Source: Eutreptiella sp. 'Long Island Sound 2002' (taxonomy: Eukaryota > Protista > Euglenida). Taken from it: 64,000 nucleotides of DNA. The DNA is taken from positions 109,120,001-109,184,000 of the forward strand of contig OZ038378.1 of NCBI GenBank assembly GCA_964036045.1. Direction: 5' to 3'. The translations under genes were made by a program, and so were the position numbers. Shown here in pieces: positions 28,981 to 44,139 of this stretch; within the stretch, counting starts at the first letter, position 1; each line of letters opens with the position of its first letter. The notes beneath the pieces were generated by a model. The model saw nothing but the letters and a program-made list of their open reading frames with translations, was not told the origin of the DNA and searched no databases.

Positions 28981-30020
28981 GTCCCGATAGGTCTTTGTAT
29001 GTCCCCAAAGGTCCCCAAAGCTCCCCGCATGTACCCAAAGGGCCCAAGAGGTCCACAAGGGTCCCCATAGGGCCCCAAAGGTCTCCATAGGTCCCCAAAG
29101 GACCCCTAGGTCCCCATACGTCCCCATGGGCACCCATAACGTCCCTGTACCTCCCCATAGCCCCCCTAGGTCCCCATTGGTCCCCATGGGCCCCCATAGG
29201 TCCCCACAAAGTGTGTAGGTCACCAAAGGATCCCATAGGTAACCATAGGTCCCCTTAGGCTGCCTTGGGTCCCCATGGGTCCCCACAGGCCCCCATAGGT
29301 CCCCATAGGCCCCCATAGGCCCCCATAGGCCCCCATAGGTGCCAATGGGTCCCCAAACGTACCCATGGGTCCCCATAGGTCGCCATAGGTGGCAATAGGT
29401 CACCATTGGTGCCCAAAGGTACCCATAGGTGCCAATAGGTTCACATAGGTCCCCATAGCTCCCGATAGGCCCCCAAAAATCCCCTAGGTGCCCACAGGTG
29501 CCAATGGTTCCCCAAAGATCCCCATAGGTGCCCACGGGTCCCCATAGGTCCCCACAGATGCCCATAGGTCCCCATAGGTCCCCATAGGTTCCCATAGATG
29601 CCCATAGGTGCCCAAAGCAACATAGGTGCCAATGGTTCTCAAAACATCTCCACAGGTCCCCACAAGTCCCCATAGGTTCCCATAGGTGCCCATAGGTGCC
29701 CAAAACAGCATAGGTGCCAATGGTTCTCAAAAGATCCCCATAGGTTCCCATAGGTGCCCATAGGTGCCCAAAACAGCATAGGTGCCAATGGTTCTCAAAA
29801 GATCCCCATAGGTGCCCATAGGTCCACAGAGGTTGCCATAGGTGCCCATAGGTTCACATAGGTGCCCATAGGTCCCCAATGGTCCCCATAGGTGTCAATA
29901 GGTCCGCATAGGCCCCGATAGGTCCTCAAAGTTCCACGTGGGTCCCCATAGATCCCCAATGGTCCCCATAGGTTCCCAGAGGTCTCCAAAGGACCCTATA
30001 GGTCCCCATAGGTCCCCAAA
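28981..30020. repeat. Tandem satellite of 10-bp unit GGTCCCCATA with variants
   Basis: Read directly. Confidence 0.95.
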
Positions 30021-30365
30021 GGGCACGCGATGATTCCTAGGGGGTCTACACCCCCCTAGGAATCATCGCGTGCCCTCTACACTAGTTTAGAGGGCACACC
30101 ATGATTCCTAGAGGGGGCCTAAATCCCCCTAGGAATCATCGTGTGCCCTCTAGACTAGGCTAGAGGGGGCGTGATCATTCCTAGGAGGGTCTACACCACC
30201 CTAGAAAACATTGCGTGCCCTCTAGACTAGAGTGCATCGTGTGGGCCTTAATCATTGTGTGCCCTCTAGTATAGAGGGAGTCGTGTGGGCCCGATACTAG
30301 TGTAGAGGGCACGGGATGATGCGCAGGGGGGTCTACTACCCCCTAGGAATCATCGTGTGCCCTCT
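30021..30365. repeat. Array of ~70-75-bp hairpin units; the first has a perfect 24-bp stem (30021-30044 / 30052-30075)
   Basis: GGGCACGCGATGATTCCTAGGGGG followed by its exact reverse complement after a 7-nt loop; degenerate repeats follow. Confidence 0.9.
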
Positions 30366-32440
30366 ACACTAGTCTAGAGGGCACGCCTACACAAGCGCAT
30401 CGCGCAGGCGGCGTCCCGGAAGGGCTTTCGGCCGTATTTGTCCCCCGAGGGGCTATGCGTCCTGGTGGAGAGAGTTGGCGTGCACCCTTGAGCATTGTTG
30501 ATGGTGTGTGTGGTTGTCCTCCTATGGCTCAGAGTTGGCGAGGTGTCTTCCCTATGCCTGGCGCATGTGTCTTTGCCTTTGTGGATGTAATTGTGAAATT
30601 CCAAATGAGGAGAGGAGGGTTGGCGGTCTAGGCCCCTCTCGCCGTGGACAGATGCGTTTGAAGAAGCCTTGTCCAGTGGGGCAAGGCCAAGGGCCTGCGA
30701 GCGAGTCACCACTTTTTTCTTGGGGCGGCCACGATTGTGTATAGAGACCGAATTGGCCATGAGACATCAAACCTCAAACCTTTGTGGACCGACATGACCC
30801 AAACCATAAACCCCCCCCACCCCCCTTGTGATGTAGTACATCCCCCGCCCAATGGAAGATGCCCCCCGCCCCCCTCTGGCCCTTCCCCAGTCCTACCACC
30901 CCAACCATGAGTGCTTTACAACAGCATGAGGTATGGAAAATGATTCGGAAAAGACCCCCCGCTTGGTGCTATGTATCTTTGTTTGTAAGAAATATGGAAA
31001 TTGCACGCACTCACTACACTCTTCGAGGTGTAGACTTTTCGTTATGTGGCCTCAACCCTAGTGTTGTAGGGCCATCAGACACCATTGCACCGTAAACCAA
31101 CAGATTTGGCGCATGTATAGGCATATGTGCTCCCACACACAGACACACACACACACACACATACGCACACGCACACGCACAAACACTTTGACATTGGGTG
31201 AAGGAAGGGTGGCCTAGGAACCCCCCTCCAAATGACATGGTAGTGCACCGGGGGTGTTTTGGGGGTCAAAATAAGCGTATAGGAACTATCAGGACCCCGG
31301 TTTGGGACCAAGGGAGTCAACTTTTTTCGGGCAGGAACCCCGCTAGGAACCCCTTCCTAGACCCTTCCTGCACCCTTCCTGGATAGACCCCTTCCTGGCC
31401 AGGAACCCCCCTTCCTATGGCCCTTCCTGCCCCTCAAAGGCAGCCCGGTTTTCGCAAAGTGTGCCTGTCCCTTCGCTTGGGATTGGATGGCGGCCGTCAC
31501 AAGCCCGGCCCGTACACGTGGTTGCTCCCTTCCGGAGGGGCAAACGTTCCACGACACGGCCATCGCAACCAACTCCGCCGTGACTTGGCCGCCGGGCACG
31601 AGCATCGGCCAGGTGCGCATCACCAAGTCCAACCTCCGCAACAGGGACCCCTGTGGTCTCTCAGACCTCATTGCAGAGACGGTGCGCCGCAACCCCAAGA
31701 TCACCGCTTTCCACGTGCCGCCCAGCGGAGCAGACTACTCCTCCTTGCTAGAGTCCCTGTCCACCCACCTGCCCAGCGACCACGCCCGGATCCATAGCCA
31801 TTACATGGCTGCCCACCCTGTGGATGCCGAGCCGCCCACCACCCTCTGCTTCGCTTCCACGAAGCCCCAGCCTGCCACTTTCGCCAAGGAGGGGTGGCAC
31901 AAGGACGCAGCCAAGCGGAAGCTCTTCCTCTTCGATCCGCGGCAGTCCCCTGAGGAGACCCTACCCATCTACTCGCTCTCCAATCGCTCAGCGTGGGAAT
32001 GGGACGGCGACGGCCCCGGGCTCACCATGCCGAGTGTGTATGCGGCCAGCGGGCCACTTGCCCTCCACGTCACCTCCACGCCGCTGTTTGTCGCGCACGA
32101 GGATCCCCTGTTGGAGCTGCCAGGTGACTGTCCCACTGCCGTGAACAGCAACCCAAGTCAGCGGGCCAGCCTGCAGCACTTGTTCATCCGGAGTTTTTTT
32201 GCGGAGTATGAGGTGCAGGAGGCGCACAAGGAGGCACTGGCGATCGCCGAGGAGCGTTGGGCCCGGATCTTCAACCACAACCGCCCAGTTGCTGGCCGAG
32301 CTCAGGACCCGCCGGACCGCCAGATGGTGTGCGGGAAGCCGGAGGACATGTCCAAGCATCCGGATGGGGAGGAACACATCCAGCTCTGGGACCTGCCGCG
32401 CCTGTCGGCCATGGTGACGCGGGTGAAGGCCAAGTTTTAC

Positions 32441-32486
32441 GAACAAAAAAAAACACAATTCAGGCATATTGTGGTTCCTCGCTGCT
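32441..32486. repeat. Repeat B2 (46 bp; 3 mismatches versus B1 at 32672-32717)
   Basis: Manual alignment. Confidence 0.95.
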
Positions 32487-32581
32487 GTACCATACACCAC
32501 AAAGGCGCTATGACGCCATAGATACACATGTTGTTCAAAGGGTGGGAGGGCGGGCCTCCTGTCATTCCGGGCGGGCGGGCG

Positions 32582-32667
32582 ATCTTCCCCAGGCAAATTT
32601 TACAAAAAAAATATGGAACAAATAAGACAGATACATAAAACCTCAGTTAGCAAAGCTAACAGTCGTT
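32582..32667. repeat. Repeat A2 (86 bp; 6 mismatches versus A1 at 37066-37151)
   Basis: Manual alignment. Confidence 0.95.
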
Positions 32668-32782
32668 TTAAGAACAAAGCAAAACACAATTGAGGCATAT
32701 TGTGGTTCCTCGCTGCTTATTTTTGTTCACTACCGCACAGGCTTAATCCGAGCACCTCAAATGGCCCTGTCCACAAAAAAAA

Positions 32783-34867
32783 TCAGGATAGAGGGTCAGC
32801 CGAACCCATTGCCGCTGTATCCAGGTTACAGGCTACCCCCCGACGTCCTTTAGGGAAACCCAAATCCCATACTGGGGAGGGAACCCTAGGGAACGACTGC
32901 AAAGCCATGTGGCGGTCTGCAGTCCCCGCATAGGCATCCTGCATCCGCCCCTTGCACTCCGAGTCTATCCTAGAGACGCTGTCAGCCGGGTTCAGATCCC
33001 CCGGAAAATATTCCAGATACACCGAGCCCTCTAGGCGTTGGATCAAATAAGACAACCTGCGCAGGTGCCTATTTTGGCGTCGCAGGCCTCCACTGGTCCT
33101 AAGGGAAGCTACCTGCTCCAAAGCTGAGGAATCATCCCCTATCAGACGCCACACAAGCCAGCCCACCCTGATGCAGAGCCGGACCCCACGCACCGGGGCT
33201 TCGAGCTCGGCCTCTTGCTGAGTCCCGACCCCCGGGGAGCAGGGGAAAACTCGGCCCCTCAAGGTCGGACCCCAAACACCAACTTTAAATTTGTTAACAT
33301 CAAAGGCGGCATCCACATACAGGACCCCCCCACACACACAAATGTTAAGGGGAAGCAATACCTGCAGTTTCCAAGCCGTATAGGAAAGCAAGAGGCAGTG
33401 CAGGAGGCTCTGGACCAAGGACAGGGGGCAATTTTGAAGCCAGTTTGGCCCCCACTGACAGTGGGCCCACCAGTCACTTAAAAAAGGGGCGAACCCAACC
33501 GTCGGGCGCAGGCTCCAAATAAAATGTCCCAAGATACGACGGGCGTGCTTGCGTGTAAGGGGCAGCACCACAGCCCGAATCCAGAGACCAAGTAAAGCAG
33601 CCCCGCCCCTGCCCCTTTTGGGAAGACCCCCGCCCCATCCCCCGAGAGCACCAGCCATTCACCAAACCACTGAATCCCAGGGACCGGCTCAAGGACACTC
33701 TTGGTGCTAATGACAGCCCCCTCCTGGCGCAGAGCATCGCACAGGCGCTGTGACACCGATGCCACCCCGGCTTTTCTATAGCCAATGACCGAAAATCGTC
33801 CAAATAGTGCAACACCAGGACACCACTGGTGTCCAAGGAAACCGTCACAAAAGCCAGTACATATTGGCATATCACTGGCGAAAAACGCCAACCAAAAGGT
33901 AGGCAGGAAAAGGCGTAGGATTTTCCGTCGATGCGCACTCTAAAGCTATTTTTATAAGGCTCTGGCAAAGTCAATGACCAAAAGGCATTGGTGAGGTCCA
34001 TGTGACAGGCCAAGAGGGGGGCACCCGGTTCCGCTCAAAGACGTAAGCTCTCAAGCTCACGCAGGAAGGGGTCGTTCAGGTGGTCCAGACAGCGGGACCC
34101 CAGCGAAAGCCTCGAGAGGCCCATGCTGTGGGCCTGTATAAGAAAGGCAAGGTCCTCAACCAAAGGCAAGCTAAAACGTGGCGGGCGAAACTGGTGGCAC
34201 TTATTGAGGCGCACCAAATGCACAATCATGGAGGCCTTCACGGCGTTTTTGGGGATGGGGAACAGGTAGCCATTGGGCCCCCGGTGACCCCCCCCCCTTC
34301 AGCACACTGCCGGAGGATCCCACCCCTGACCAAAGCACGCGCCATAATGAGGCCCTCAAGGGAGATCTCTGGCATCTCCCCCAAATCACGTTCCGTCACT
34401 TCCTGAAAATCGAGCGGGGCAAGGAAATCCCACAAAAACTCGGGAATGGGGATGTTCCCCACCTGTCCTAATCCCCTATCCCACACAGAAGGGTCGAGGC
34501 TTAGGAGGAGGGCGACCGGGCAGGTAGAATCCCGTAGCACACAGGACCACACATCCCCTCGCAGGGAGTCTAAGGCTGTGATTAGCTGATCATCCACGTC
34601 TACCATACCCAGGTCCCTGGCTACCCTCCCCCCCTGGATGAACAAAAAACGGATTTGCAGGTGCAACAGGTCTCGTAGGCCCCCACTCAGTCTGAGGCCC
34701 GTGGAAATTTCGTCCAGCCACCCGTGTCCTCGTTCTGATCGGATCAGTCTCTCCACAGCCCTCTCTCGGAGGCATTCAACGTTTACCGGCGCCGCCGGCT
34801 GCACGTCGGGCCAGCGCTGCCAGGTGCCGATCCGAGACCCGCCGTGGTTCGGGGCCGTGTCCTCCAT
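32783..34867 (-). pseudogene. Reverse transcriptase - RNase H (ORF3), frameshifted
   Basis: IPKNAVKASMIVHLVRLN, DLTNAFW, LPFGWRFSP, HYLDDF, YVDAA, QQEAEL and PGDLNPADSVSR. Confidence 0.9.
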
Positions 34868-35208
34868 GTTGTGAAACCCCGGGGCCTTCCTTGGAACCGT
34901 CCACCACCTCGAGGCTGTCCTGGGCTTTGTGCCCCTCCACTGGCGTCATGCTGTCTCGCGGGACCCATCTCCACGTCCTGGTCCTCATCAACGTCGATGG
35001 GACTCTCCTTGGAAGTAGCCGGCGTTGTTGGTTTTTCGCTGTGAGCCCTACCCCGTGTCGGTATCGGGTCCATGGACCTCGTACCCCCGGGAGGCTCCAC
35101 TTGTGGTGGGCCCCCCGCTCCTGCAACTCCTTTCGATACCGTACGCCGGAATTTGCGGCTTCCTTGCTCTCGGCGACTTTCGATGACCGCCCGCACCGCG
35201 GAGGCTCT

Positions 35209-36120
35209 TTAGGCTGCGTCCGCTCGTCTCCAGGCATGCCACCTGGCCTCTGATCTGTCGGTCGCCTGCAAGAGCTTGGCCATACCCATCTCGAGATCTA
35301 CCGCCCGTCCCAATGCTGGCGCGTCACCGGGTGCGATCCTGCGGAGCCACGTAGCCCAGACCGGCGAGTACGGCCCCAGTCGTCGTGTGATCTGGCGATG
35401 GTCTCGCTTGATCCCCTGGTACGTGATTCCCACCTTGGAGATGTTCAACCGGCGGAGGGACAAAATTTCACCCACTCTGCACAGCGTGGCGAAGGATAGG
35501 ACCGCTGCGGCATAGATTTTCCACTCCCCCGCCCTGGAGCACGATTCGGCCATGAGCTAGAGCAAGTCGGGCCCTCCGAACTGTCGTTGTCCCAGGGAAT
35601 CCACTGCCGCCTTGGAAATTCTCCACAGCCTGTCCCATTGCAGCAGGGGGATCCACCCCAAGGTAGCCACTGCTTTGAGGGCGGATATGCATCCTCTGGC
35701 CGCCGCTGCCTTCTGTCCCTGTGCAAACATGGAGAGCAGAACCTTTTCCGCCAACGCTTGCATGTCCTTCGGCTGGACAGTGCCCTCGAAGTGGGCGAAT
35801 CGTCGAAGGTGGCTCGTATAGGTCCTTCGTGTCGCTGGCCACCATGTTGAAACCAAACAAGCCGCTGGGCACTCCGTGGGGTGGGTCTCACCCAGGATTT
35901 GCCATGCCTCCACCAGCGCCGGCCATTCGATGACGTCCTGGGAAGCCACAGGGGTGGGTGCCAGCGCAGCCCCCCCCCCCCCCCCCCCCCCCCCCCACGA
36001 AAGCGGTCCAGCCGTTGTAGCATTGATGTCGCGTCCACCGGCTGGGCCGCCAAGTCCCGTCACTCCAGTCTGGGGCAGTTCCATACCAAGTGCCTCTCGA
36101 TGAGCCCATGGCCTTTGCAC
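35209..36120 (-). pseudogene. Tyrosine recombinase (ORF2), interrupted
   Basis: ATRRTY, LCRVGE (R), GIKRD (K) and WHAWRR (HxxR). In-frame TAG at 35557. The catalytic Tyr region is disrupted. Confidence 0.85.
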
Positions 36121-37055
36121 GTTTTACAGGGTCCCACTGGGGCAGAGTCCGACCGCACCCACTTTCCTTTATGGACCTCGAAGTACTCAGTCCCATCAAC
36201 CATTTTGAAACCGCGTCGCATAACCTTTTTAAGGAGTGCCCCCGCCGTAGTCAGGCCTGAGGTAAAGTCCGGATCCGCTGAGGCCTGCTTTGATGAAGTG
36301 GACTCTGACCACACCAGCAACCATAAGGACTCCGCCATGAGCACCGCAGAACTATTCAAGGACAACACCGGGGGGGGTGTGCCTGAGCTGTCATCCATGG
36401 GGGCGTCCCCTGCCGGATCTCTAGCCCCCACCACCTCAGTCCATACCGCGGTGTCTTTCTTCTGGTCGTCCGAGAGGCTGAAAAGGAGGGGCTTCTGCGC
36501 CTCGTCATCCCACTTGGGTGTCATTCTCATGGCATCCAGCGGCAGGGCCTCCTTCAGAATCGCGCATTTGAGGTAGTACAGGACTCTGGTGACCCACTGC
36601 GGGTGGTTCCATACCAAGGCCAGTTCATGCAGCTCCCTGAGGCACAGGGGTGGCAGAGACCTTTCCGACCGTGTGGGGGCTTCCGATAAACTGTTGACCT
36701 TCTCCGTCAGGGACTTGATGAGGGCAGCCTGTCCCTCTAACAAGCTCATCAGGGCGGGATCCGAAGTCCTGTTGACAGTGTCTGGCTGCACTTTGATTTT
36801 CTCAAAAGCCCCTGTGGTCATGTTTATTTGGACCTGCTCTGTCAACGTGTAGCCAATCGGATTCTCAATGAGCGCTTCCTCTGTCCCTCCAAATCCTGAG
36901 GCACCGGCAAATGTCTGGAGCCATTGCGAACGCGAATCCCCCAGATGGCGAAGGGACTTGGTTAACCGCATTTCTGCCTTTGCCCAAGACGCTGCTGGGG
37001 TTCCCTCTCGCAAAGAGTCGTGCACTCCGGCCGAGAGGTAATCCTGAAATTCCAT
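36060..37055 (-). CDS. gag-like ORF1 of the YR retrotransposon, with C-terminal CCHC knuckle
   Basis: Uninterrupted 331-aa ORF starting just after repeat A1; CKTCKGHGLIERHLVWNC. Confidence 0.75.
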   Translation of the reverse strand: MEFQDYLSAGVHDSLREGTPAASWAKAEMRLTKSLRHLGDSRSQWLQTFAGASGFGGTEEALIENPIGYTLTEQVQINMTTGAFEKIKVQPDTVNRTSDPALMSLLEGQAALIKSLTEKVNSLSEAPTRSERSLPPLCLRELHELALVWNHPQWVTRVLYYLKCAILKEALPLDAMRMTPKWDDEAQKPLLFSLSDDQKKDTAVWTEVVGARDPAGDAPMDDSSGTPPPVLSLNSSAVLMAESLWLLVWSESTSSKQASADPDFTSGLTTAGALLKKVMRRGFKMVDGTEYFEVHKGKWVRSDSAPVGPCKTCKGHGLIERHLVWNCPRLE

Positions 37056-38124
37056 GCATTATGCCATCTTCCCCAGGCAAATTTTACAAAAACAATCAGG
37101 GACAAATAAGACAGATACATAAAACCCTAGTTAGCAAAGCTAACAGTCGTTGGAGGCAATCTTGGGCAAGACGCTGCACGTCATGACACAAGGGTACATC
37201 GAGCCCAACACCCACGTTCGACAACTGCCGCACCGAGATTTCCCAGCAGCGTCACTTCCTGTGGATGGCATCGGCCTCTCCGTTTTCTGGCCAATGTCAA
37301 TGGATATCCCTGATGATGAGATTTGCGCACAGTTCGTCGCCATGTCTGCCCGTGCCTTCCCTCGGCCTTGGATCATCCACGGCATGCCAATGAGAAGGGG
37401 TTCCCTGTGGGTGATCTGCTCAACGGTGGTGCATGAAGGAGGCGGCCTGCCATTGGCTGCGGAACCGGGGTCCCGCCGTATTATTGGGTTATGTGGGCTG
37501 CCGACGCACACCGTATCCTACGCCACCACCCACGCCATCACGCCCCCGTTCTGCGCGCACTAGGCCGCTGTCAGTTGTGGAGTCCACGGATGCCGCCGGA
37601 AGCCGACAAGTGAGAAGTGCTTTGGGTGTGGAGTCGTAGTCCTTTGCCGCAATCACACGGGGATCGAGTGCAGTAAGTGCGACACCGAAGCAGTAGCAGC
37701 AGCAGCATCCGATCCGGGGAGTGCCGAGGCCGTTGATCCAAGTCGTGTCCCGGCCCTGCAGCACATGGTGACCTGTTTCATTCCATCGGATGGGACGACG
37801 CTTTACACCGGGCATTACGAGGCAGCGCCGGCACCACATGTGATTCCCGCTAACACAAACCCCAAGCCGAAGCACTGCCCACTGGCGGGGCATGCACAGG
37901 AGAGCGAGTGGCTGCCTTGGCCAAGATCGGAACACCACACCTTGTTGGTTACGCCGCCTGGGAGCATTCTGGTGGTGGTGAACGGCCGCTTTGGAGGATT
38001 CACCCGGGGTACCGAGGAGAGCAGTGACGTTTTGGTGTACCGGATGGAGATGGCACCACCCGAGCTCAGACCCGTGGACCCGAGCTCGTTGATGGCCGCC
38101 GGGGCGATCGTTCACAACACCAAG

Positions 38125-38671
38125 GTGGCACAGGAGCAGGCCCTTTAGTGTGCATGCCAGCAGGTTGACACTCTGTCCCCTTTGAATCGCAGGGCCTTTG
38201 GTTGGAGGGGTTCACAATGCAATGGGGCAAATATATGGTCCGGACTGCTTGCCAAGGGTCAGCGGCAGTGGCAATGCAAGGGGAGGGTTGTTTGAGGGTT
38301 TGAACTGGGCACACTGTGTGGGTTGTGGCATGTGCATGTCACTTAGGAACCCCCCCCCCCTTCCTGCACAGGAACTGTCCCACGAACCCCCCACGAACCC
38401 CCATCCTGCACAGGAACCCCCCCCCCCCCTGCTGCACAGGAACCATCCCAGAAACCCCCTAGGAACCCCCTTCCTGCACAGGAACCATCCCCCTTCCTGC
38501 ATAGGAACCTCCCCCCCTTCCTGCACAGGAACCCCCCTTCCTGGACCCCTTCCTAGACCCTTCCTGGACCCTTCTTGCACACGAACCCCCCCCCCCTTCT
38601 GCGCAAGAACGCCCTTCTTGGACCACTTCTTGTTCCCTCTCGTCGCTGGCATTTCCCGTACTTCTCTTCAG
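38125..38671 (+). other. Predicted GT-AG intron containing an AGGAACCCCC/TTCCTGC array (~38343-38620)
   Basis: AAG|GTGGCA donor and CTTCTCTTCAG| acceptor; phase 0 restores the reading frame. Confidence 0.6.
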
Positions 38672-40071
38672 GCTGATGTCGAAGTGTACCCGCGGCTGGT
38701 CCTGAAGTCCGTCGATGAGGAGGAGCGGGCAGCCCCACTGCCAATGGCACCATCGGAGGCTGCGCGGACTGTGGATGGGCAAGCACCAAGTCTTCAAGAC
38801 CCTCTGACATGGCTGTTGCAATCGACGCTCACCATCACAGGCATGCACAGTCCTATGACCAGGCAGGGGGGCACGTTCTGGTATCGCGACTGCACACTGA
38901 CCGTCCGGAAAGGGAAGGCAGCCACTGCCCTGCAACTGCGGTTGCCAGTGGCATGTACAGACAGTCTGGCCGAGCTGCCCCAAGGGCATGCAGGACATGG
39001 CAAGGCGTACGTGGTTGCGCAGTACTTGTGCCTTGTTGGCCATGCCAAGGCCGGCAACACATGCTCGTTCTTGGTGCACAGCGAGCACACCAGCTTCAAG
39101 ACACCAAAGAGGCCAGCAAGGCTGACGCGTTTGGATGCCGGTGTCCCCATTGAGGTGCAGGACGCATTTGACGGGTGGCTGGAGAAGTACCGCAAGCGGC
39201 AAGAACAGGGTCAATTGGGTGGACGCTCACACGTGAAGAAGGAGCCCGGCACGGATGCACGTACACAGCCACTGTGGCAGCAAACTGGGGCCAAGGTCAA
39301 GTCGGAGCAATCAGAAAGGGCAGCGCGGGGATCCGTGAAGCAACCTGCCTAGAGGACCGTCATCACCGACTCCCCCTCCAAGCGGCGCGAACGAGGCAGT
39401 CGGGGGCGGGCAAGTCCAATGGCAATGGACACGGGGACAGTGATCACGCAGCTGGCCCCTCGGTTGCAGGAGGTCGTGCGCACGGAGTTGAAGGGGGTGT
39501 TGCCTGATGCCGTTCAAAAGGCGATGGCAAGTGGCGGCAAGACCCGTGCAGAGCAGGCCACAGAGCAGGCAACCAAGAAGCAGCGCGAAGCACAGGAACA
39601 GGCTTTCAAGCACGAGGCAACCATTGCAAGTATGCAGCCACGACTCATTGCCCTGGAAGACCGGTTGGAGGCTGCTGAGGATGCGGCGCGCGAGGCGCAG
39701 GCAGGCAAGGTCAAGGCCGAGTCTCTGCTGGAGGAGAAAGCTGCGGAATGTGACCGGGCGTTGAGCATCCTCAACCGGACGTACGGCCAGGGCCCCAGCC
39801 ACAGCAAGTGATGAGGAGTGGCCAGGCACAGTGGCGATGAGAGCGCAAGGATCCGAAGTGTCCCTGTGGCCTGGTGGCTGTTGAGGGGTGCTCGGGTTCT
39901 GCCAACCTGTGTGGGCATGAGACGTGCAGAGACAACCCTTGGTGGCACACTGCGAGCGAGTTGCGTCCTGGTGGTTGCAGTACACGTGTGTTGTGACCAG
40001 CCCACTCCCAAGATTGCACGCATGCATGCATAGCTGTACGAACGCGCCAAGGGTTGTGCGACGCGGTGCGC

Positions 40072-40156
40072 AAAAAAAATCCACACCTTAACCCATAACC
40101 AATAACTAGTCCTTTTTGGCGTAACCCTAACGCATATCTAACCCTTATCTTTTTTT
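40072..40156. mobile_element. 85-bp insertion with A-tract/T-tract ends, flanked by a 6-bp direct repeat GTGCGC
   Basis: GTGCGC at 40066-40071 and 40157-40162; internal degenerate CCTAAC motifs. Confidence 0.65.
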
Positions 40157-40375
40157 GTGCGCCACAGTCGCGTAGGATAGTAGTCACGTCGTGCGCAGGG
40201 CGCGTACGGTGCTGCCACGAGCGGGGAGCTTCACATAGCTTCACCCTTGGGGGCACCACCAAAATTCCCAAGGTCTCCAAGCATGGACGCAGTTGCATGG
40301 CATGTGTGGTTGCAATGCCCCGATGTGACAGCGGTGTTTGAGAGGACCCGATGGGGCAGTACACCGAAACACCAG

Positions 40376-40673
40376 GTACAGGAAAGGGAGGGATTCCTTT
40401 GCAGAAAGTGTCTATGAAGGGGTACAAGAAGGGGGTTGTTGTGCAGGAAGGGGGGGGTTCCTGTGCAGGAAGGGGTCTAGGAAGGGTCCAGGAAGGGTCT
40501 TCCTGTACAAGAAGGGGGGTTTCTTGTGGGGTTCCTGGGACAGTTCCTGGCCAGGAAAGGGGGGGGGGTTCCTGTGCAGGAAGGGGGTTCCTGTGGGGTT
40601 TTTGTGGCACTTCCTGTGCACATCCTGCCCTCGCAATTCTTGGCAAGCTTCCATTTTAAATGCAATGCAAAAG
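40376..40673 (+). other. Predicted GT-AG intron containing the reverse-oriented AGGAACCCCC array
   Basis: CAG|GTACAG donor. The AAAAG| acceptor is weak but gives phase-0 continuity into AIANFLGDVV. Confidence 0.4.
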
Positions 40674-42339
40674 GCCATTGCCAATTTCCTTGGCGATGTC
40701 GTTCGAGTGACCCCGTATTGGGATCCACAGGTTGATGCACGGCGACAGAGACGGAAATGAATTCGCGACGTTGTGGGCGCTGTGCTTGGAGATGACGACA
40801 TCGTTGTGCGCACAGCCGGTAACGGTATACTGATTGAGTCCAACAACCACGAGGTGCGCGATGACGACGACCAACATGCCTCCGAGGAAGTGATACAAGT
40901 GTTGCAAACGGCACACCAAATGAGCCTCTCCACGCGCAACATGTTAAAATTGGAGCGCAATTGTACACGAAGAGAAATTAATGGAGGGGCACAGCAAGCT
41001 GCTGCCATATGTCGCAATGGCCCTGGAGGTTTCATCGGGGGTGGTATCACGCCGATCTGCCGCTGTATGTCCACTCCTTGAAGTAGTGCAAACCCAACGA
41101 ACGTTGAGTAGGGCATGCGGTACCTTTAACATCCCTCGTCAAGACCGGCTCTTGATTATCATTTGCGCAGATGCCACACCACTGTGGCAGACCTCGGCCA
41201 CCAAGTGCGACATCCACGTGACCGTTTGGTCAGAGGGTGTAGCAGCTGCAGGCGACGTGCGACGCTGGGCGACGTGGTGGGCGCTTGACGGACCGGATGA
41301 CACGCACTGTCTCCGGGCCATTGACACTAAGGCAAACCTTAATCAGGATGTTTTGGATGTTTTGTCCACTGTGGATGTTTGGCACTTGGGGAATTGCATC
41401 CCCAGTGTATGTGCCTTGACAGGTGATGGCAAGGCCATGTTTTCGGCCAATTATCACAAGGGGAAATGTTGGGTAGGCTGCCATTGCATTGATTCCTTGG
41501 CACGTGCCAATTCTGTACCGGCCCAATGCAGGTGGGGCTCATTTTTGAGGGCAATTGGACCATGCAACCGCGTTGGTAACGTGGAGCATGGCTCGTGTCG
41601 TATTGCGAACGCCATTGTTAAGCGAGTCAATGAAACATTGAAAGATTTGATTGAAAATGGTGCACCCGACGTTGCCCGTGCTGCAAGGGAGGCAGGGAAA
41701 GCTTTGGTTTTGGAGCTTCACAAGCTTTTGGATGAGGTGAAAAATGTTCCGCATGCTGAGCGGTTGGCTCCCCGGCCAACCAAGGCCGGAAAATGTGATA
41801 TAACAGGTGGCAAAATGTTTTTTGCAGACAGTGCATTACATGGCCGAGTTGTGGCCGTATTGCGGGACAACCTACCTGACGTGGCCTTTGGTAGCATTAA
41901 ATTTTTCCTATTGATGAAGCATGTGTTATTATCAATGCATCGAATGCACGCGCTCTGGCGCAAAAGGGATTGGCTAACACAGGCCGAACTCAAGGAATTG
42001 GAGTCTGCAAGTGACCGTTTAGGGGAGCGTTGGGGTAAATTGCAATGGGGTGTGACCCCTTGGGTACATTGGGCATGTGTTCACATCGCACATTTTGCGC
42101 GTCGCTTTGGGAGTTTGTACGTTTTTCGCAGTATTCCGACAGAATACAGAAACCAACCGTTCAAGCGGCATCTCAAAAACTCAATGCGCGGTTGGTGTCT
42201 TCGGCGACCCCGCATCACACGCCTCCGAATGAGGCATGTGGTGCACACCGACGCGTTGAGTGTCGGTTTGCAATTGTACGAGGCGCAGCAAGGCCGCGGT
42301 GCGGCCGTTGCCAAGCGACGCAAGCGGCATGTGGACTAG
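40674..42339 (+). pseudogene. RAG1/Transib-like DDE transposase (core ORF 40981-42339 open; upstream TGA at 40758 and frameshift ~40978)
   Basis: IIICADATP (D1), LTGDGKAM (D2), NVEHG, and VTPWVHWACVH...GSLYVFRSIPTEYRNQPFKR, which aligns ungapped to RAG1 ITNYFHKTLAH...[20 protein letters not shown] (RAG1 sequence recalled from memory). Confidence 0.8.
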
Positions 42340-43030
42340 TTACAACATCAATGCGGTGGCACAATGCGATTCAAACCCCGGCGAACGGATTTGTGTGCTA
42401 TTGCCTCGGGACACGATGGTCATAGGAAGGGTCTAGGAAGGGGGGTTCCTGCCCAGGAACGGGGGGGTTCCTGCCTAGGAACCCCCCTAGGAAACCCCCT
42501 TCCTGGCTAGGAAGGGGGGTTCCGAGCCAGGAAGGGGGGTTCCTAGGGGGGTTCCTGCCCAAAACGGGGTTCCCAAAAACACCCCAAAATTGGGCATCAC
42601 CAACCCGGGACCCAATGTCCCCCAACGCAGGCGCTTTGAAGGCGCGGTGTTTGTGTTCAAAAGCTTCGGGTGCCGTCTTAACGTGTAGGAGTAGAAAACC
42701 CCTAGGAACGGGGGGGTTCCTAGGCCATCCTTCCTTGGCTGCACCCCAATAGGCATAGGCACTGTGGGGGTGCCCTTGCTTCAAGCCTTGGTTGGGGGGG
42801 CTGCCTTTCCTTTCTTTACACGCTTTTCAGCGGGGGGGGGGGGGGGGGCTTGAGAAACTGCTTTTGGGGGGGGGGGGTTCAATCAGGGGTGTGGGAGGGT
42901 GTTCTTTTCTTTATCTCATAGGTGTCGCTTTTCATACAATAAAAATGACAACAATCAAAAAGATCATTTCACAACTTGCAGGTGTGCCATGCTATGCTGT
43001 GCAGTGTTGTGGTGTACGTCCCTGTAGGTC

Positions 43031-43380
43031 CCCCATCAATTTTATAGCCCCCTCCTATCAATTTCAGAAACCCCCCCAATCAATTTCATAGCCCCCTGTA
43101 TCAATTTTAAAGTCCCTCCCCATCAATTTTTTAGCCCCCCCCCATCAATTTCGTAAGCCCCCCCTCTATGACTTTCATAGCCCCCCGCCCTAGCAATTTC
43201 ATAGCCCCCCACCCATCGATTTCATAGCCCCCCCCCCCATCAAGTTCATAGCCAGCTCTCCTATCAAGTTCATTGGTCCCCCCCCCTATCAATTTCATGC
43301 CCCCCCCCATCGATTTCATAGCTCCCTCCTATCAATTTCATAGCCCCCCCCCCCATTCAATTTTATAGGTCGCCCCCTAT
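43031..43380. repeat. Minisatellite, ~21-22-bp unit ATCAATTTCATAGCCCCCCC
   Basis: Read directly. Confidence 0.9.
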
Positions 43381-44139
43381 GAATCTCATAGGCTTGTGTT
43401 TATTGATACACGTATGCATTAAAGGGTAGGCCGCGCGTTGTGCACACAGTACAACCTTGCTTCCCTCTTGGGGCTCCTCCTTACGTTCTATAAGAGAATG
43501 GGGGGAGTCCCTAATTTGTCTTGCTTGCTTGCAGCTTGGTATTGGCAACCTACTGAGAGGCGTCCTCTGAGAAGGGTATAAATCGTGGATGGGCGTTTGG
43601 CTGGGCAGGAACCACTGCCAGGCTGGCAGCTGCATCTCCGTTTTCGGACAGGTGGGTATACAGGGAAGGGTGACATTGGACTCGCATCGTGCAACTCTTC
43701 AAGGCGAGGGGAGAGGCGCTACCGGGCAGCCCCGGGGGCTGTGCTGTGCTGTGTTATGTTGTGACGTGCACTGATGTGTTGTGTTGTGCTTCGTAGTGCT
43801 CTACTGTGTAGGTGTATGTGCATGGGCATGGGCATGGGCAAGGGCAGGGGCATGGGCATGGGCATGGGCAGGGGCATGGCGGGGGGGTGGATTGAGGGAG
43901 GGGGGGGGGGGTTGTAGACGCTAGGGTCTAGACCACTACCCAGTTCTACACCTCCAGGGTGCGGTGGCAATTGGTTGGTGACAATGGGACAAGTCTGATA
44001 TTAGGGGGGGACACGGGGGGGGGGAATAAAAAGGGTGTTGGGGTGGGGGTGGGGGAGGGGGGGGGGGGGGTGATGGTCCATAAAGGGCTAAAGTCTGAAA
44101 TCTGAGAGCCCATTTGGTTACTATACACAACGCTGGGGA

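Follow-up and report, generated by a model that had tools for sequence, protein, structure and literature searches.

Transposons of the CMCT clade (CACTA/EnSpm, Mirage, Chapaev and Transib, as well as Plavaka, ESTA and Lanisha) have in common a D, D, C..C, H, H..H, E pattern of transposase residues, together with target-site duplications (TSDs) that are 2–5 bp long (PMC12730594). Transib is the only superfamily with a 5-bp TSD, and its 38-bp terminal inverted repeats (TIRs) start with a CACAATG heptamer, of which CAC is perfectly conserved (Kapitonov & Jurka, PMC1131882). Oxygenase genes have been described as accessory genes in several such transposons. TET/JBP genes are found in fungal CMCT transposons and in others (PMC12730594), a JmjC accessory gene is found in EnSpm elements of Porphyra, and giant Plavaka elements of red algae (Bostrychia, Chondrus, Gracilaria and Kappaphycus), all with 2-bp TSDs, encode PAG3 (bioRxiv 10.1101/2025.02.11.637652). 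PAG3 combines a weakly ParB-like N terminus (HHpred E = 0.29) with a 2-oxoglutarate (2OG) oxygenase domain, whose best HHpred match is PHYHD1 (2OPW) of the PhyH family, and its gene adjoins tandem arrays of inverted repeats (bioRxiv 10.1101/2025.02.11.637652). Plavaka-like elements are reported from across Archaeplastida (PMC13519894). Here, an element comparable to these is described from Eutreptiella sp. 'Long Island Sound 2002', in a stretch of 64,000 nucleotides (GenBank assembly GCA_964036045.1, contig OZ038378.1, positions 109,120,001 to 109,184,000, forward strand) that is referred to as the window and to which coordinates refer unless another locus is named. In all likelihood the element, at 31195–42748, is a decayed autonomous cut-and-paste transposon with a RAG1-fold transposase of the CMCT clade, not demonstrably Transib, accompanied by a PhyH-type dioxygenase gene (ORF1) and by a gene for a coiled-coil protein (ORF2).

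The open reading frame (ORF) at 40981–42339 (+), in which an earlier note had recognised a RAG1/Transib-like transposase, is a partial gene. Homologous proteins of about 550 residues begin some 100 residues earlier, and the complete frame is broken by an in-frame TGA at 40758–40760 and by a frameshift at approximately 40975–40988. The motifs on which that recognition was based are all present and are invariant or nearly so in relatives, namely ICADATP (D64, position 41170), LTGDGK (D149, 41425), TPWVHWACVH (H363/H368, 42067/42082) and PTEYRN (E388, 42142). Further key residues are C163/C167 (41467/41479), spaced as C-x3-C in the window's family, and H203 (41587). Judged across relatives that are 33–45% identical, the invariant or near-invariant residues are D170, D255, C270, C273, H309, H464, H469 and E489 in the numbering of the intact relative P0021. 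In mouse RAG1, H937, H942 and E962 have this same H-x4-H-x19-E spacing.

An AlphaFold2 model of P0021, made from an alignment of 11 sequences, reached a predicted local distance difference test (pLDDT) score of 75 and a predicted template modelling (pTM) score of 0.73. Foldseek comparison of this model with the Protein Data Bank (PDB) returned 48 significant matches, every one to the RAG1 core, to the amphioxus RAGL protein BbRAGL (6b40) or to HzTransib (entries beginning 6pq). The best was chain B of the RAG1 core structure 4wwx (E = 5.6e-12, TM score of 0.55, approximately 660 aligned columns), and the next fold after these was that of the P element transposase (E = 3e-3). To our knowledge, RAG1 and Transib are the only CMCT members with solved structures, and for EnSpm, Mirage, Chapaev and Plavaka we know of none in the PDB; the best match to RAG1 thus places the family in the CMCT clade, and not in Transib. 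Searches with phmmer and hmmsearch of Pfam and of PDB sequences, using the window ORF, single sequences and family profiles, came back empty, and RAG1 and HzTransib went unmatched even at E ≤ 10. The residue pattern of the clade is present, D, D, C..C, H and H-x4-H-x19-E, and the TSD of 2 bp lies inside the clade's range of 2–5 bp.

The extent of the element was determined by aligning its ends with those of five other copies of the same family (L002, L003, L004, L005 and L008), which place the termini at TGGG... (31195) and ...CCCCA (42748). The comparison set comprised the family-1 loci L001–L005 and L008 and four copies of a second family, family 2 (L006, L007, L013 and L014). Alignment of ends across copies defines a family-1 TIR of 38 bp, TGGGGTGCAGCCAAGGAAGGGTGGCCTAGGAACCCCCC, whose 5' terminus reads 5'-TGGGGTGCAGCC... 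The TIR is bipartite, with a terminal 12-mer TGGGRTGCAGCN, a 15-bp spacer and a GGAACCCCCC box. This spacing is kept in families 1 and 2, as are the termini 5'-TGGGRTGCAGC and hence the ends TGG..CCA. The two TIR ends are identical, and no asymmetry of the 12/23 type was seen. A 26-bp inverted box noted earlier was recovered at 31201–31226 and 42711–42736 as the inner part of the TIR; these are its 2 matches in the window, where 0.00 would be expected. The outer limits first given to the element, 31184 and 42766, were superseded by the alignment with the five copies. The CACTGTG at 42760–42766, which had been taken for a terminal heptamer of a recombination signal sequence (RSS), is flanking DNA 12 bp outside the element, and the flanks of other copies are unrelated to it; the CACTTTG at 31184 is likewise flanking DNA. 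CACWGTG occurs 16 times in the window against 13.45 expected from shuffles, and is thus no commoner than chance.

Each of the eight copies with both ends has a TSD of 2 bp (Table 1), where a chance match has a probability of 1/16 per copy. There is no strict target, because the duplicated dinucleotide varies among copies. An empty site is provided by the L004 copy, which sits in an 89-nt repeat whose uninterrupted paralogue at 37063–37151 reads CAAAAACAATC. Joining the L004 flanks minus one AA gives the sequence of this paralogue, which fits a 2-bp AA duplication. TSDs of 5 bp or 7 bp, considered from the flanks of L005 and L002, were dropped, as the eight copies share just 2 bp and the empty site fits 2 bp; the 5-bp duplication expected of Transib was accordingly not recovered from the genomic copies.

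These observations bear on whether the element is a genuine Transib/RAG-like transposon, with a RAG1L orthologue, RSS-like heptamer ends, a 5-bp TSD and a dioxygenase in place of RAG2L. The transposase core fold (TM score of approximately 0.55 over 580–670 columns with 4wwx, 6b40 and 6pqr), the DDE residues with a split Cys2/His2 zinc site, and the H-x4-H-x19-E spacing are all as in RAG1, and no strong PDB match lies outside RAG1, BbRAGL and HzTransib, which also rank best. The TIR, at 38 bp and bipartite, also resembles that of Transib (PMC1131882), and in one copy, L005, the two flanks agree perfectly over 5 bp, GCCGC. Against this stand the 2-bp TSD in eight of eight copies, with which the empty site is concordant, the position of CACTGTG outside the element, and termini of TGG...CCA where CAC is invariant in all Transib (PMC1131882). 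Moreover, there is no RAG2-like partner, no sign of 12/23 asymmetry and, in the Pfam and PDB searches, no sequence similarity to RAG1 or Transib. The RAG-like motifs do not single out Transib, being common to the clade, and non-Transib CMCT members such as ESTA also match RAG1 in HHpred (Kojima 2025, PMC12730594). With these ends and this TSD, a Transib/RAG identity is largely refuted already, and we consider it highly unlikely. What stands of the earlier RAG1/Transib-like assignment is the RAG1-like fold, to which all 48 significant PDB matches belong; membership of Transib or RAG does not. By its ends and TSD, the CMCT element looks most like Plavaka or Mirage-type elements.

The transposase family is abundant. 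An exhaustive profile search recovered 976 transposase clusters at 50% identity (E ≤ 1e-3), most of them on environmental contigs of 1–3 kb, and scans of contig collections gave two short loci in JGI metagenome contigs and none in viral contigs. Dozens of paralogues of the transposase and of its upstream neighbour gene are present in ENA assembly ERZ25074135, where the contigs that carry them reach several Mb. Most distant relatives, L011, L012, L015 and L016 among them, come from many ENA, JGI and Logan samples, one being labelled a lake metagenome scaffold, and are 1–3 kb contigs with just the transposase gene; such single-gene contigs may be short metagenome contigs or transcripts, and the gene may be expressed. 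On the 5-kb contig L010, from another sample, a complete hAT transposase with a BED finger, DUF659 and hAT dimerisation domain (787–2760) lies directly upstream of a related transposase on the same strand, either as a nested insertion or as part of a composite. A more far-reaching proposal would make the family a previously unclassified, environmentally widespread RAG1-fold lineage of approximately superfamily rank, placed between Transib and EnSpm/Plavaka, with symmetric 38-bp bipartite TIRs (terminal 12-mer, fixed 15-bp spacer, C-rich box) whose recognition would resemble that of heptamer, spacer and nonamer, and with an obligate PhyH-type dioxygenase/zinc-finger partner that would bind the element's own arrays and modify its chromatin. 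We hold this proposal only tentatively and regard it as somewhat doubtful.

ORF1 encodes a protein of approximately 690 residues, in which an N-terminal domain is followed by a PhyH-like 2OG-Fe(II) dioxygenase domain, then by a Cys/His finger with eight ligands and lastly by a C-terminal domain. The presence of a dioxygenase/zinc-finger gene, proposed in the earlier note, is borne out, and the domain can be specified further. Seven of nine domain segments from two families matched PhyH, the best with E = 2e-4; the longer paralogues P0195 and P0208 gave weak matches under the Pfam cut-off (E of 0.003–0.009). The family-2 ORF1 has the same weak matches to PhyH and 2OG-FeII_Oxy_3, which are the only domain matches, and a Tet_JBP domain was not found in ORF1. 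A homologue at locus L009, from another sample, matches PhyH with 27.9 bits (E = 3.4e-6), above the Pfam gathering score of 22 bits, and aligns with the ORF1 profile with an hhalign probability of 99.7% (E = 7.5e-26). The residues H138, D140, H206 and R223 (H-x-D...H...R) are invariant in the ORF1 alignment of the two families, and L009 has WHRD...IHRGGG. The finger, C-x4/5-C-x8/10-C-x2-C-x6-C-x2-H-x5-C-x2-C, is found in all three lineages and is followed by the further C-terminal domain. In the window, H-R-D lies at 37231–37239, the distal His at 37432 and the finger at 37576–37680. Because the family-2 homologue, the above-threshold match of the L009 homologue and the conserved catalytic and finger residues agree, ORF1 is solidly predicted by sequence comparison to contain a PhyH-type 2OG-Fe(II) dioxygenase domain. 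No ParB-like domain was detected in the ORF1 N terminus by HMMER searches of the PDB and Pfam.

The association of the dioxygenase with the transposase extends beyond the window's family. Family 2, in the same genome, has a transposase 33% identical to that of family 1 and perfect 36-bp TIRs (TGGGATGCAGCG...), within which lies an ORF1 homologue (23% identity, E = 7e-30; tblastn E = 1e-24). At L009 (ERZ27267618), the transposase of a third lineage is followed by an ORF1 homologue. Gene order is ORF1–ORF2–transposase in families 1 and 2 and transposase–ORF1 in L009. Among the three lineages, transposases are 33–36% identical and ORF1 proteins 23–25%, that is, they have diverged by 64–67% and 75–77%, respectively, as long-standing linkage predicts. 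The two genes therefore passed the check for co-mobilisation that the earlier note had put forward, being inside the same TIRs and staying together across three divergent lineages. The end of the L009 element is abutted by a coding stretch for a zinc knuckle (gag-like; L009 1–400).

Alternatively, the dioxygenase gene might be accidental cargo that was captured once, or a neighbouring host gene without a role in the element. Capture of host genes by transposons is known to occur, the related transposase of L010 adjoins the hAT transposase and not ORF1, and no ORF1 homologue was found that is annotated or outside a transposable-element context, in searches whose results were dominated by copies from the same genome. 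This explanation has difficulty with a gene that lies inside the TIRs of two families with such divergent transposases and beside a third lineage's transposase in another sample, that diverged alongside the transposase with the catalytic triad and finger kept, and that in family 2 forms protein clusters with 491 and 220 near-identical members. Casual capture is accordingly given little credence, and the dioxygenase is a constant partner gene of the transposase.

Family 2 is young and was recently active, as its copies are near-identical and its TIRs perfect. The genome contains many copies of family 1 and hundreds of family 2; family-2 copies are 97–99% identical, and their near-identical proteins group into clusters with 275, 491 and 220 members (the latter two being those of ORF1). 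Every sampled family-2 copy carries a lesion: L006 has a frameshift in ORF1, L007, L013 and L014 have internal deletions, and in L014 ORF2 and the transposase are fused. A piggyBac-like DDE_Tnp_1_7 gene lies beside the L006 element (L006 12640–13962, minus strand).

The element bears most resemblance to red-algal Plavaka elements with PAG3, with which it shares the 2-bp TSD, TIRs (13–35 nt in red algae), several genes, a PhyH-related 2OG oxygenase, inverted-repeat arrays beside the oxygenase gene and a proposed role in anti-silencing or self-modification. The red-algal elements differ in their size of 10–21 kb, in carrying PAG1 and PAG2 (N6-adenine methylase-SET) and in their termini, CGTCT..AGACG or CACTG..CAGTG, whereas the elements described here measure 6.6–6.9 kb, lack PAG1 and PAG2 and end in TGG..CCA. 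In addition, the Bostrychia genome has records of proteins with the Plavaka transposase domain (PF18759), to which the present transposase has no match. The likeness of ORF1 to PAG3 is one of description: ORF1 has a Cys/His finger after the oxygenase domain, and the ParB-like N terminus was not detected.

Fungal PlavakaA, ESTA and TET-bearing EnSpm/Plavaka elements are similar in having RAG1 as structural or HHpred match, a 2-bp TSD and a 2OG-Fe(II) dioxygenase (PMC12730594, citing Iyer et al. 2014). PlavakaA has a 2-bp TSD and TGT..ACA ends (PMC12730594), of which only TG..CA is common to the TGG..CCA termini here. The fungal dioxygenases are TET/JBP enzymes, unlike the PhyH-like domain of ORF1, and ESTA targets TA whereas the dinucleotide duplicated here varies. 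A different comparison is offered by plant CACTA/En-Spm elements, in which TnpA and TnpD are produced by alternative splicing, the termini are CACTA, the TSD is 3 bp, the transposase has a Transposase_21 domain and no dioxygenase is encoded. These belong to the same clade and also have subterminal arrays of short repeats and more than one element-encoded protein; the present element has no CACTA termini, a 2-bp TSD and no Transposase_21 match. A search of the literature for a phytanoyl-CoA dioxygenase paired with a transposase in an element with TIRs returned nothing relevant. The novelty implied earlier for the pairing is weakened by the published 2OG oxygenase accessory genes of fungal (TET/JBP) and red-algal (PAG3, JmjC) CMCT transposons, and the PhyH-like dioxygenase with its zinc finger is a variant of this published theme and does not form a category of its own.

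Inside the TIRs, ORF1, ORF2 and the transposase gene all lie on one strand, and the element without a nested insertion measures approximately 6.9 kb. Subtracting 32437–37148 from the window element gives a single 6976-bp high-scoring segment pair with L004 9659–16567 at 88.6% identity, and L003, L005 and L008 agree with L004 on the extent. ORF2 consists of a conserved N-terminal region, a basic linker and a coiled coil, has no Pfam domain, and has a weakly similar gene in its place in family 2. No kelch or RAG2 match was found in either of the two partner genes.

Around these genes lie four palindromic arrays, as the earlier note had indicated in describing repeat arrays. The motif TTCCTGNNCAGGAA has 13 matches in the window against 0.19 expected, all within the arrays. 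The motifs are embedded in runs of G or C, are found on both sides of genes, and are specific to each lineage: TTCCTG-NN-CAGGAA in family 1, GTTATCGCGCGATAAC in family 2, GTTACTGCGCAGTAAC in L009 and GCTGGAA.../...TTCCAGC in L010. The layout of four arrays and three genes recurs in family 2 (L006), and arrays flank the L009 transposase gene on both sides. The N terminus of the predicted protein P0001 is translated array 3 of another copy. This pattern suggests that the arrays are bound by a dimeric, element-encoded DNA-binding protein that would have co-evolved with them.

The inner arrays (38345–38610 and 40400–40620) might instead be the ends of a nested non-autonomous element, so that the 11.5-kb region would be a pile-up of several elements. 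They are mutually inverted over 62 nt at 87% complementarity, and one copy, L002, lacks 37333–40173. No TIR sequence (TGGGRTGCAGC) lies beside them, though, and the layout is found again in family 2, where the motif is unrelated, and in L009, where it is a third one; on this ground, ends of a nested miniature inverted-repeat transposable element (MITE) were rejected. L002 is an internally deleted derivative, since the ORF2 segment is present in each of L003, L004, L005 and L008. A pile-up is thus very improbable, and the region is read as a single transposon with one later insertion. Two insertions in the window (32435–37150 and 37333–40173), at first read from the L002 comparison, were reduced to one by the same four copies.

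Table 1 Features of the transposon in the window, and TSDs of the copies that have both ends
Feature	Locus and position	Strand	TSD	Basis or remark
Left TSD	31193–31194	.	AT	Sequence reading; equals AT at 42749–42750
Left TIR	31195–31226	+		Degenerate, 32/38 consensus bases; left-end alignment with L002, L003, L004, L005, L008
Array 1, C-rich, motif CCCC-TTCCTG-NN-CAGGAA-CCCC	31325–31430	+		Upstream of ORF1; repeat search and motif scan
ORF1, first part: N-terminal domain and start of dioxygenase	31487–32436	+		tblastn with P0195 residues 10–340; contiguous in L003 and L004
Nested retroelement, interrupts ORF1, not part of transposon	32437–37148	-		Absent from L002, L003, L004; 3-bp GTT duplication at junctions
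ORF1, second part: predicted PhyH-like double-stranded beta-helix region, finger, C-terminal domain	37149–38148	+		tblastn; homology to L009 ORF
Array 2, C-rich	38345–38610	+		Between ORF1 and ORF2; repeat search and motif scan
ORF2 pseudogene: conserved N-terminal region, basic linker, coiled coil	38640–39811	+		tblastn with L003 ORF2, 73% identity
Array 3, G-rich	40400–40620	+		Directly upstream of transposase gene; repeat search and motif scan
Transposase pseudogene, ~557 codons	40665–42339	+		Homologue comparison, frame reading; ATG at 40665
Array 4, mostly G-rich	42420–42570	+		Downstream of transposase; repeat search and motif scan
Right TIR, 38 bp, ending ...GGCTGCACCCCA	42711–42748	-		Alignment of ends among copies
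Right TSD	42749–42750	.	AT	Sequence reading
Window copy, family 1	window		AT
Copy, family 1	L002		AG
Copy, family 1	L004		AA
Copy, family 1	L005		GC
Copy, family 2	L006 5410–12040		CA
Copy, family 2	L007 9570–11776		CA
Copy, family 2	L013 7527–14185		AG
Copy, family 2	L014 7528–12529		TA

The window copy is dead and unable to move by itself, all three genes being broken and the left TIR damaged. In addition to the lesions of the transposase gene, ORF1 is split by the insertion and has a premature stop at 37561–37563, ORF2 has an in-frame stop at approximately 39353, and the left TIR lacks six bases, one G and CAGCC, reading TGGG(G)TG(CAGCC)AAGG with the missing bases in parentheses. The 4.7-kb nested retroelement contains an RVT_1 domain (E = 1e-9 for 33474–34013, minus strand) and a weak RNase H-like match. 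An 89-nt segment is repeated in it, at its 5' end (37063–37151) and near its 3' end (32579–32667), and this is the repeat in which the L004 transposon copy is inserted.

The window as a whole looks eukaryotic, with short broken ORFs and microsatellites; a Pfam scan of 10 flanking ORFs and an Rfam scan of the window gave no match. A (CA)n microsatellite (31134–31182) abuts the left end of the element. Just downstream of the right end, a tandem array of units of approximately 22–24 bp (CCCCCCCCATCAATTTCATAG) occupies 43028–43400, followed by a GGGCAT hexamer microsatellite at 43798–43887. At 30020–30400 there is a block of units of approximately 72 bp, each an imperfect palindrome (…CCCCCCTAGGAATCATCGCGTGCCCTCTACACTAG…), which is also present at L003 490–1100; its presence at two unrelated loci identifies it as a dispersed satellite or MITE-like host repeat.

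Several points weigh against the reading of the element as a CMCT transposon with a PhyH-type dioxygenase partner. For the transposase, the Pfam models RAG1, Transposase_21 (PF02992) and Plavaka (PF18759) gave no match even at E ≤ 10 among 11–14 family members, so that the CMCT placement is drawn from the modelled fold and the motif pattern, without a sequence-level link to curated transposase families. In two copies the flanks match beyond a strict 2-bp rule, by GCCGC in L005 and by AGGACAG in L002. For ORF1, the PhyH score of the window's own family is 16.8–18.4 bits against the 22-bit Pfam cut-off, the AlphaFold2 model has a pLDDT of 29.7 and is unusable for the fold, and profile searches of the PDB, whether made with the whole protein, with its oxygenase domain or with its N-terminal domain, gave chance matches or none. 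The identity of an array-binding protein and the substrate of the dioxygenase are pure inference.

The mobility of the family is shown by the many copies, the TSDs and the empty site. The transposase would bind the TIRs, excise the element and reinsert it by DDE cut-and-paste with a 2-bp stagger, possibly with hairpin-type excision as in RAG/Transib. The palindromic arrays would serve as binding sites for a dimeric element-encoded protein, for which the N-terminal domain of ORF1, ORF2 and the transposase N terminus are candidates. By analogy with the proposals made for fungal TET/JBP and for PAG3 of red-algal Plavaka, the dioxygenase may target the DNA or chromatin of the element itself, or else a host silencing factor, and so counter silencing.

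For the origin of RAG, the element is a caution that a RAG1-like fold and motifs alone are insufficient to call an element Transib or a RAG ancestor. The RAG1 fold and zinc-site architecture reach a family that is abundant, with 976 clusters and, in a single genome, near-identical copies in the hundreds, and that is unrecognised by current domain libraries. The PhyH-like dioxygenase with a zinc finger joins TET/JBP and PAG3/JmjC as the third kind of 2OG oxygenase linked to a transposon, and it strengthens the case for repeated recruitment of oxygenases by CMCT transposons, probably for escape from silencing. Family 2, being young, is a practical candidate system in which the role of such a dioxygenase in a transposon could be tested.

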